Source: Bugula neritina
Taxonomy: Eukaryota > Animalia > Bryozoa
Reading direction: 5' to 3'
NCBI GenBank assembly: GCA_964035545.1
Contig: OZ037767.1
Coordinates: forward strand, 2,739,680-2,803,679
DNA length: 64,000 nt
The notes under the pieces are model-generated. The model saw only the letters and a list, made by a program, of their open reading frames with translations, searched no databases and was not told the origin of the DNA. The number at the start of each line of letters is the position of its first letter. Within the stretch, counting starts at the first letter, position 1. Positions 51,570 through 61,576 of the stretch are shown here, one piece after another. The translations under genes were made by a program, and so were the position numbers.

Positions 51570-51638
51570 CTAAGACTTTCTCAGAATACTAATGGCTTTT
51601 TTATTTGCGTTGTCCACTCGATTGTCCAGGGTTTCAGC
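51570..51638 (-). CDS. SNAP25: SNAP-25 alternative last exon 7b ([22 protein letters not shown])
   Basis: AG acceptor, phase 0, aligns residue for residue with exon 7a ([21 protein letters not shown]). Confidence 0.8.
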   Translation of the reverse strand, partial: AETLDNRVDNANKKAISILRKS

Positions 51639-54600
51639 CTATATATGAAATATAACTATAGATTAGCTACAGAGAGCACGACTCCATATATAGAGCGTAA
51701 ACTTTCCTTCAACTTAAAAAAATGCTGTAAAACCTGACCAGCTTTCCACAAAGTGAGTGCATACAAGCACTGCTGAGCACTGCATGCACTGCTCTAAACT
51801 AATTAACTAGCTAGCTGACTAACTAGCTAGTTAACTGACTAACTAGCTGATTTCTTTCAACTCATAGAACATAACATAATGAAACATATACGGTGTAAGA
51901 CTTGAAAATAATATTTAAGCAACCAAAAAATTAGTATGAAGCATGGAGACAGACATAAGTGAGACAAACAGACAGACACAAAAGGAAAAGCAAGTGGTTT
52001 GTTCAAGAGCAAGAAGCATGAACATAATTCAGTTTTAAAGACACTCTGGAAAATTGATAATTTTGAACAAAAGCATACTAATACTATTTTACACATAAAA
52101 AAAGTAGTTTGTATATTCAAATGTAGGTTTTCAAAGATTATACTACTTCAGTATTTAGCAGACGAGAGAAAGACTGATAAACAGATGAAACAAAAGGACT
52201 AATGAGTAGACTATATAAAAGTAATTAGAAAGACTGATAATAAGACTATAATACAAAAAGACTGCTTAATAGACTATAATAGAAAAGGTCAGACTCAACA
52301 GAAAGATAGACTATATCAAAAAGACTGATGAATAGATTATAATAGACTAAAACAAAAAGCTGGCAAATAGACTATAAGGTATTTTTCCATGTTTTATATA
52401 GGCCACACCTCCTAACACCTAAAGGGATGGAGGCTAAATTTATAAAGATTATATTGATAAAATAAAGGCAACATAACACAGTGCAGATGATTTAGAGAAG
52501 TAATGCTCTGAAACCAGACAGTGCAGCGGGTGGGGTAGCTGGGTAGGGGGTCAAGATGCACCAAAGGAGGAGCATGGAGCTATGAGTGAGAATCTTAGTG
52601 TGTCTTTACTATGATGAGCCAGAGGTTGGCATTTACCTGCTGAAATGCAGTAAATAATTTATCTTCTCAAACAAAAAAATGAGAAACTATAAATCAATAT
52701 TAATAGGACAAGGCAAGTTGACCCAAGTAGCAAAAGCTGTTAACAAGTAAGTCAACAACCGTACAAAAGGCCATAAATAACATTTGATGTAAATTTTTTA
52801 AAAAATACAAAATAAATTTATACTATAAATATTGAAAAGAACACAACTCCTGTTTTATTCCCAAAAACTGTTAGGATAGCTATACACAAATCATTTTTGA
52901 AATGAAAGACAACTCTTATTACACTTTGAGAACGTATTATTTTATTAGAAGTTGCCCACTCTTTGGAGCCTCTGGCTCATCATATTCACGACACATCGGG
53001 TAGGGAGATCAGAACCCAGAGTTGAAACAAATAAGTTGTTGAAATGATAATCAAATGAAAACGTAAATTTTTGATCACAAAAGTAATTGAAATTAACAAT
53101 TCCTGTGTACTATTCAAATGGGTCCCATCATGGACTGAAAGTTGGGGTAAATTTAGTGCATGAGCAAATCATAAAGTTAGCAATAAATAACAAAAATCAA
53201 AGCATAGTGTGCAAAGTAAAACGTGAAGGTGTAACGCCATGCCTATGAAGGAAATATAAAGAAGTAACACCATGCCTATGATTTGAGAAGTTTGTTGGCG
53301 CGTTTGTTGGCCTCAACAACTCGCGTCTCATTAGATTGGGCCTAAAAGTAGAATATACAAGAATGCAGGCTAAGATAGTTGCTTTAAACTGTGCGTGGAA
53401 ACACAACTTCTGCTGTCATGTAACTGGAAGAGTAAGTCATGTAATAAAAGTTCATTTCATATTTGAAATAGTACTGAATAACTTTCTTATAAAACACTCC
53501 CAAGTGTAAACACTATGCAATGAAAGTATCAAACTAAAATAATAGAGAATTACATTATGAAGTTATTCCACAGATTCCTAAGTTGGTGAAATATTCTTTT
53601 CAAAAATTGCAATGTATAAAAAACAGACTCAAACTTTTTACCACATTATACACTCTATCTAACCAGCAATTAATTGTGTGCAGGCAAACACCACACGATA
53701 TTCAACTCACCTTCTTATTTATCCTATCAATGACTTTGTTCTGTGACTCAATCTCATTGCCCATATCTACGGCCATATTCCTCAAGTTAGACACCATACT
53801 GCCAACTTGCTGCAGGTTCTCTTCCATCTCGTCTTCTCGCGCATCGTCTGTGATTCTAAAATTGAAAGTTTATCCAGCTATGTTACACAGCAATAGCAAT
53901 CCTCTCTAACTACAATGCCACACAGCAATCTTACTTAATGATCATATTACACAGTAATAGTAATCCTATCTGATTTTTTATGACACAACACAACAATAGA
54001 AATTTATTTGCCTACTATGTGAAACAGTAATACCAATCTTACCTAGCTACCTCGTGACACAGCATGCAGTACTAATCTCACCTAGCTACTATGATGTTAC
54101 ACAGCAGTACCAATCTTACCTAGCTACCATATTGCCAGTCGGAGCCATTCCTCCCCCGACCACCGGCCGAGGCCCGTCTGTGTTTGCCTGTCCGTCATTC
54201 TGACTCTTCCAGCTGGCGTCATAGTCCATGCCTTGCGGGTTCTTTGACCTGAGTTAAATGTCAGACAAGTTAGAGAAAGGAAGACAACTACTATCACCGC
54301 ACAGGTGACTCGACAGGAATTATTCTAACCATATTATCAGGAAGTTGAGTGTGCTAAGAGAAGAAAGAGATACAATTTAACAGCTAGTGTTATACTACAT
54401 ACAGAAAAGAGCAGGAGAGAGGAAGTGTAGGAAAATGAAAGGCTGTAGGTGGAAAGAAAAAAAGGTATGAGGTGAGAATAAAAAAGAAAAAGAAGGTAAA
54501 TGGGACGGATGGAGCTACGACATATGAAGGGGGAGCAGATAAGAGTGCAGGCGGAGGGGGGAGGCAAGTGAAGAAACTGGAGAGAAGATGGTAAGATGGA

Positions 54601-60600: not shown

Positions 60601-61576
60601 ACTACCGCCTTGCAGATACAATAGATGTAATAACTCACTCTATTCAATTAGTCTATTAACTCAGTTTCACTGACTGTACTAACTCAGTCAGTCTCACTAT
60701 TAACTCAGTTAGTCTCACTACTAACTCAGTCAGTCTCACTATTAACTCAGTTAGTCTCACTACTAACTCAGTCAGTCTCACTATTAACTCAGTTAGTCTC
60801 ACTACTAACTCAGTTAGTCTCCCTACTAACTCAGTCAGTCTCACTACTAACTCAGTCAGTCTCCCTACTAACTCAGTCAGTCTCACTACTAACTCAGTCA
60901 GTCTCACTATTAACTCAGCCAGTCTTACTACTAACTCAGTCAGTCTCACTACTAAATGAGTCTCACTCACTCTATTAACTCAGCCTGATTAGCTTAAACA
61001 TGTAACCATATAAACAGAACATGACCAGAAATTATGAAATAATTATCTTTTAATGAACATTTCATTTTATGCTAAATTCGAATCAACAAGCAAACTAAAA
61101 CTAAAGTCAGGAATTAAGCTTGGTGATTTTAAATGAATTTGAAAATAGATTTTATGTTTTAAATATTAGACAAACAACTAAAAAGTTGTAGCTCTTCAAC
61201 AGTAAAACAATAAATATGCCTGAAGAAAAGTTTTGGTAGAACATGCACGCAGTATAGTTTGAGGAGCGTGTTACAAGTAAATACACAGCACAGTAGCGGT
61301 GACTTTAAGTTGAAGGTTAAGGAGGTTGTTAGTAATGATAACTCATTCAGTGAACTGCACTGAACATCTTGAACAGGAGACCACAGGCTAAAGTTTTCTA
61401 TATGGATCTACATATAGCCATCACTAAAACCATAGTCTCAGTTCCTCAACTTACAATATTTGTATACTCTGTCTACTAACCTCATCAGTCGTCTGATTAA
61501 TCTTCACCCTGATCTGCCCAAGCTCATCCTGAGGCTCATCGTCAAATCCGTTAGTATCAACCGCAGAGTAAGACAT
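51570..61576 (-). CDS. SNAP25: SNAP-25 (canonical copy) with alternative exons 1a/1b, 3a/3b, 7a/7b
   Basis: 1a 61576-61481 or 1b 58056-57943; 2 55863-55822 ([14 protein letters not shown]); 3a 55625-55577 or 3b 55177-55129; 4 54727-54610 ([31 protein letters not shown]); 5 54248-54120; 6 53855-53711 ([24 protein letters not shown]); 7a 53341-53276 or 7b 51638-51570. Confidence 0.95.
55129..55177 (-). CDS. SNAP25: SNAP-25 mutually exclusive exon 3b ([16 protein letters not shown])
   Basis: 49 nt, TTTAG acceptor, G|GTAAGG donor, same length and phase as 3a ([16 protein letters not shown]). Confidence 0.88.
56230..56380. repeat. About 32-bp tandem repeat (ACACACAGTACATGTATGTGTTGCATGTAGC)
   Basis: 4-5 visible copies in a SNAP-25 intron. 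Confidence 0.85.
57943..58056 (-). CDS. SNAP25: SNAP-25 alternative first coding exon 1b ([38 protein letters not shown])
   Basis: ATG-initiated, phase-0 donor GTAAGT; its C-terminal half aligns with exon 1a (..[15 protein letters not shown]) and with the paralog's first exon. Confidence 0.85.
58770..59040. repeat. 27-bp minisatellite (CTATACTACAGTATGTAGTGTTCT/CC-type)
   Basis: Directly visible tandem array (gives the SILQYVVF repeat ORF; unit is 24-27 bp). Confidence 0.8.
60653..60983. repeat. 21-bp minisatellite (CTAACTCAGTCAGTCTCACTA), about 14 copies
   Basis: Directly visible tandem array in a SNAP-25 intron. Confidence 0.92.

Follow-up and report, generated by a model that had tools for sequence, protein, structure and literature searches.

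The minus strand of the 64,000-nucleotide stretch of the Bugula neritina genome analysed here (the window; contig OZ037767.1, positions 2,739,680 to 2,803,679) contains a SNAP-25 gene of ten exons, referred to as gene A, whose exon boundaries all agree with those proposed in an earlier note on this DNA (Table 1). We consider it probable that this gene is a cheilostome bryozoan SNAP-25 with an old lophotrochozoan three-module layout, in which regulated exon choice would tune exocytosis.

Table 1. Exons of the SNAP-25 gene and associated features in the window
Feature	Position	Strand	Description
Exon 1a	61481..61576	(-)	96 nt, GT donor; first coding exon, ancestral type; N-terminal extension of Qb helix
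Exon 1b	57943..58056	(-)	114 nt, GT donor; alternative first coding exon, acidic N-terminus
Exon 2	55822..55863	(-)	42 nt, constitutive
Exon 3a	55577..55625	(-)	49 nt, AG/GT; SNAP-25-like, with K40, L47, V48, D51, and E52 kept
Exon 3b	55129..55177	(-)	49 nt, AG/GT; mutually exclusive with 3a; K40Q, L47I, D51N
Exon 4	54610..54727	(-)	118 nt, Cys cluster, single copy
Exon 5	54120..54248	(-)	129 nt, linker
Exon 6	53711..53855	(-)	145 nt, most of Qc helix
Exon 7a	53276..53341	(-)	66 nt with stop at end; N at layer +4; terminal or internal
GC-type splice donor	53270..53275	(-)	directly after 7a stop; joins 7a to 7b
Exon 7b	51570..51638	(-)	69 nt with stop; last exon; L at layer +4
Gene B, tandem paralog	46463..49860	(-)	seven single exons, 225-aa open frame

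The SNARE family test found two SNARE motifs with glutamine at both zero layers (Q53 in exons 3a and 3b, Q174 in exon 6), and the gene matches SNAP-25 chains in the PDB exon by exon. The linker Cys cluster is present and a transmembrane segment is absent in the exon 4 translation and the full model. Exon 5, scored as a single exon, reached 16.8 bits against Pfam PF00835 (cut-off, 25 bits), a domain that is carried by the proteins P0158 and P0313 of close relatives. The sizes of exons 2 through 7 (42, 49, 118, 129, 145, and 66 or 69 nt) follow the exon pattern of vertebrate SNAP-25. Elsewhere in the window, the six-frame scan yielded one peptide, at about 23030 (-), that presumably resembles the P-loop of a small GTPase (Rab40-like) and another, at about 4295 (+), that presumably resembles ribosomal protein L11.

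The alternatives lie in three exon pairs. Exons 3a and 3b are adjacent, have the same length and phase, and are identical at 31 of 49 bases, a similarity greater than chance (0 of 5,000 shuffles), as is that of 7a and 7b (p = 0.0004). The similarity of 1a and 1b taken alone is within chance (p = 0.11), and the homology of this pair rests on position, phase, and other species. A six-frame scan turned up no additional exon copies inside the gene, and the 118-nt Cys-cluster exon was single, as the earlier note had it; its sole other match in the genome is in gene B. All eight combinations translate without an internal stop into 214 to 221 amino acids, and the earlier note's claim of intact splice sites, open frames, and matching phase for the alternative exons was confirmed. 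Inclusion of both 3a and 3b, or of neither, shifts the frame and leads to a stop at about codon 65 or 51, respectively, and decay therefore probably removes such transcripts. Neither steric clash nor docker-selector pairing is supported for 3a and 3b, which are separated by an intron of 399 nt with no inverted repeat shared among four species. Reading 1a and 1b together was rejected, since the nearest AG before the 1b ATG adds one base and causes a frameshift. Comparison extending to about 17 kb beyond the window found no conserved upstream noncoding exon; just upstream of the 1a ATG, at 61590 to 61625 (-), acceptor-like and donor-like motifs occur that could delimit an upstream noncoding exon.

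RNA evidence was obtained from Logan contigs of three probable RNA runs (X1, X2, and X3) from the same species but a diverged strain, 3 to 6% from the window. Contigs were aligned to positions 52100 to 58099 (6,000 bases), so that 1a and 7b are visible only as loose ends, and the contigs show presence only; their depth does not rank isoforms, and rare forms may drop out. Direct joints were found for 2-3b, 3a-4 (run X3), 3b-4, 4-5, 5-6, and 6-7a (runs X1 and X3), with 3b spliced in all three runs, and loose ends gave 2-3a (25 of 28 matches to the right exon, run X3) and 1a-2 (26 of 28 at 61510, run X2). Of the junctions listed in the earlier note, those of both choices at exon 3, 1a-2, and 6-7a were thus recovered, whereas 1b-2 and a direct 6-7b joint were unseen. 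No contig of the three runs lies on 1b, which is not proof of absence because exon 2 itself fell below the likeness threshold in two of them, and 7b is outside the aligned 6,000 bases. No 3a-3b joint was seen in these contigs, which can lose rare forms. Probable-RNA contigs also align at 56351 to 56788, within the intron that separates 1b from exon 2; they could stem from a repeat, from carry-over of DNA, or from a 5' region that was left unspliced. Among relatives, another bryozoan's metatranscriptome encodes the proteins 1a-3b-7a, 1a-3b-7b, and 1a-3a-7a, exon 7b is coding in proteins P0274 and P0313, and the Watersipora RefSeq models comprise six exon combinations, four of them with 1b, whose ortholog is used in RefSeq isoforms X1 to X4.

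A fully free combinatorial system, which would produce every one of the eight isoforms through three independent choices, is possible but somewhat doubtful. Each combination has an open frame, the full set of eight is covered when the RefSeq models of Watersipora and the JGI contigs are pooled across bryozoans, and gene models of Pomacea and Mercenaria contain many of them. However, exons 3 and 7 lie about 390 nt apart and cannot be phased from RefSeq models or short-read contigs, phasing of exon 1 with exon 3 is impossible for such data at k=31 across a 42-nt exon, and models based on short reads join exons without constraint. Moreover, both tandem paralogs described below keep only a 1b-type with a 3a-type exon, which is a hint of coupling. 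Eight isoforms are thus an upper bound, and a regulated subset of the eight is probably favoured.

The comparison with relatives and the selection analysis agreed with the earlier view of the six alternative exons as working parts: all are conserved, with pN/pS values of 0 to 0.31 (purifying selection) against Watersipora and two other bryozoans, computed with synonymous sites mostly near saturation. The ratio was 0.15 to 0.21 for exon 1a, 0.19 for 1b, 0.05 to 0.11 for 7a, and 0.09 to 0.31 for 7b, and the 3a protein is identical in Watersipora despite a pS of 0.82. Exon 3b has a low pS and 90 to 93% DNA identity, splice flanks included, to two other bryozoans; such low synonymous change with conserved flanks fits a regulated exon. 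The window gene falls into a well-supported tree group with Watersipora subatra, which also supplies the closest named protein to a close relative's transcript.

The order 1a-1b-2-3a-3b-4-5-6-7a-7b was read outside this species in W. subatra (RefSeq XP_067941356-63), where the three alternative positions and the a and b types are also the same, and in the snail Pomacea, both with all ten exons, and partially (2-3a-3b-4-5-6-7a-7b) in another bryozoan, L004. The automatic RefSeq annotations of bivalves, gastropods, a chiton, a pair of nemerteans, and the brachiopod Lingula contain isoforms that vary at the same three places and with the same a and b types. When non-bryozoan pairs were split into two classes without the bryozoans and the window exons were then scored, the a and b copies each fell into the class of their own type, for exon 7 in 12 of 12 species (0 of 20,000 null draws) and for exon 3 in 11 of 11 (p = 0.013), although these species are related and mostly molluscs and the counts are not independent trials. 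The 7b class has L4 in all 12 species and also D9, I18, and R20, all of which are present in the window 7b; Q2, D3, and I9 are shared at exon 3. The resemblance of 1b to molluscan 1b was weak (p = 0.38 for the window exon and 0.04 to 0.15 for that of Watersipora), and this link rests on order. Evidence for recurrence of the a and b types in molluscs, nemerteans, and a brachiopod is firm for 7a/7b, moderate for 3a/3b, and weak for 1b, and 1a is clearly the ancestral type. The simplest reading is that the layout arose once, before bryozoans and molluscs diverged, and that some lineages later gained further copies.

Vertebrate SNAP-25a and SNAP-25b (exons 5a and 5b; PMC2581893) belong to the same family, have the same intron positions and phases, and likewise arise by tandem exon duplication and mutually exclusive splicing. 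In vertebrates it is the 118-nt Cys-cluster exon that is duplicated, whereas in the bryozoan gene the variable positions are the first coding exon, the last exon, and the 49-nt exon that corresponds to vertebrate exon 4. The layout arose independently of the duplication of exon 5 in bony fish, and this part of the earlier description, an independently evolved modular system, stands; a lineage-specific invention is unsupported, because a mollusc has the same exon order and the a and b types span three to four phyla. In insects the same 49-nt exon is multiplied, with three versions in Copidosoma, Bacillus, Apis, and Cloeon and two in Drosophila models; where there are three copies, the first is 3a-like and the others are at most candidate 3b orthologs, and no 1b or 7b type was found in the Copidosoma locus. 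Further versions occur in other animals: the linker exon 5 exists in two forms in some bivalves (P0392, Mercenaria; P0395, Dreissena), exon 3 in five forms in Lineus, and exon 7 in three in Liolophura, and an additional last exon, different in type, is present in the cockroach and in gall midges.

Convergence, by which bryozoans, molluscs, nemerteans, and insects each gained their pairs from exons prone to tandem duplication under selection for similar residues, would accommodate the three 49-nt exons of insects and the second last exon, with N retained at layer +4, of some insects, as well as the extra exons of Lineus, Liolophura, and the bivalves and the fact that tunicates and SNAP-23 reach Q40 with no known duplicate. 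We nevertheless regard it as quite unlikely, given that all three pairs stand in the same order in a bryozoan and a snail and that five residues diagnostic of 7b (L4, D9, I18, and R20, with V8 in the class) are common to three phyla. An open-access search found no literature description of the invertebrate layout; a prior description is possible, above all for insects, and a 1999 cockroach paper reportedly dealt with SNAP-25 variability.

At the 3' end, the earlier note's terminal pair holds insofar as 7a and 7b are two homologous C-terminal exons, but 7a is also internal, its stop being joined to 7b in RNA. In runs X1 and X3 a contig runs on past the stop codon of 7a and enters 7b at its first bases, and an mRNA of another bryozoan (L009) carries the full 7a-7b join. 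Read canonically, this joint can only be a GC-AG intron. Its donor motif, GCAYGG, after the 7a stop is kept in three species and lost in the paralog without 7b; Watersipora and Pomacea, unlike the window gene, have no GC donor there. Both a proximal untranslated region (UTR) contig and the splice onto 7b are present for 7a, and in this bryozoan group 7a works partly as a cassette ending in its own stop, with 7b serving as the 3' UTR. A stop at the very end of an exon should escape decay under the 50-nt rule. At 53240 to 53285 (-), the 7a stop and GC-donor motif recur some 36 nt farther downstream, where a second donor is possible. That the join is a reverse-transcription template switch and 7a purely terminal seems very unlikely: the 7a end and the 7b acceptor have six bases in common, GC donors are uncommon, and the loose end spans just 12 letters, but the join appears in two studies of this species and in the full mRNA contig of another, its only canonical reading is GC-AG, and the three species that retain the donor motif contrast with the paralog from which both the motif and 7b are missing.

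Downstream of gene A, gene B is, by its sequence, a fast-evolving tandem paralog. About 49% identical to gene A, it has seven intact exons, including a 1b-type first exon and a 3a-type exon, a last exon that is unclassable as 7a or 7b type (26.2 versus 26.3), and a very long tree branch. A 35- to 38-nt tandem repeat at the start of intron 5, which repeats the exon 5 donor, occupies 53878 to 54133 in gene A and 47129 to 47416 in gene B; it is about 70% identical between the two genes, occurs nowhere else in the genome, and is absent from the L004 intron. The L004 locus has a downstream copy of its own (4416 to 6616) with 1b, 3a, and 7a only, which is 84 to 88% identical to its own gene A, introns included, and reflects either a second duplication or gene conversion. 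Watersipora has no tandem paralog within 10 kb downstream.

Dead b exons, or a locus merged from two haplotypes or genes, the two ways in which the earlier note could have failed, are implausible in the extreme, and already refuted for 3b and 7b, by the splicing of 3b in three runs, the strong purifying selection, the absence of a second, allele-like locus copy from the genome, the layout shared with other species, and a single DNA contig spanning 52100 to 58099 (which may be the assembly's own source), even though 1b is without RNA support here and a real paralog adjoins the gene.

With residues numbered by PDB alignment, the swaps fall where the earlier note placed them: at the N-terminus, centrally in the Qb helix, and at the C-terminal end of the Qc helix. 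Exon 1 is upstream of layer -7. Exon 7 runs from A185 to the end; 7b has L for N188 (layer +4) and I at layer +8, so that late zippering would be altered. Most bryozoan 7b copies are without the serine equivalent to S187, presumably the PKC site. Exon 3 covers residues 39 to 54 (layers -4 to 0), and both versions keep the core layers, the changes in 3b (K40Q, L47I, and D51N) facing outward. Synaptotagmin-1 contacts K40 and D51 in the primary interface, at which SNAP-25 and SNAP-23 differ by K40Q, L47I, and V48T (PMC8967716). SNAP-23 in neurons leads to asynchronous, Syt7-driven release (PMC4244210). The SNAP-23 exon shares K40Q and L47I with 3b and is nearer the 3b class (63 versus 59.5), and the SNAP-25 exon is nearer the 3a class (68 versus 59); the two are nevertheless separate genes, not splice forms, and SNAP-23 keeps D51 and has a 7a-like last exon.

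In the regulated three-module gene that we favour, 1a and 1b would be alternative first coding exons, probably with separate promoters, and 3a and 3b would exclude each other. Inclusion of 7a would yield the 7a protein, with 7b or its own sequence as UTR, and skipping of 7a the 7b protein. Exon 3a, in which the residues that contact synaptotagmin-1 are retained, is predicted to serve fast, Ca-synchronised neuronal release, and 3b to give a SNAP-23-like form for slower or general secretion, because its interface changes resemble those of SNAP-23. Choice among these exons, regulated by cell type, would tune exocytosis from one gene. A more speculative extension, which we think unlikely, is that 3a/3b is a SNAP-25-like/SNAP-23-like interface switch of bilaterian age, that vertebrate SNAP-25 and SNAP-23 each kept one exon after duplication, and that the bryozoan paralogs with 1b and 3a replay such fixation.

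As a property of this genome the layout is less striking, because the alternative isoforms are already in the automatic RefSeq annotation of many relatives; it is real, functional, old, and widespread rather than unique. SNAP-25 splice diversification is usually presented as a bony-vertebrate innovation (PMC2581893). The data indicate that lophotrochozoans have kept a different and larger set of swappable exons since before the bryozoan-mollusc split. The swaps fall on the synaptotagmin interface and the late zippering layers and would provide natural variants for release assays, and the SNAP-25 of Aplysia, Lymnaea, squid, and Drosophila may be several proteins.
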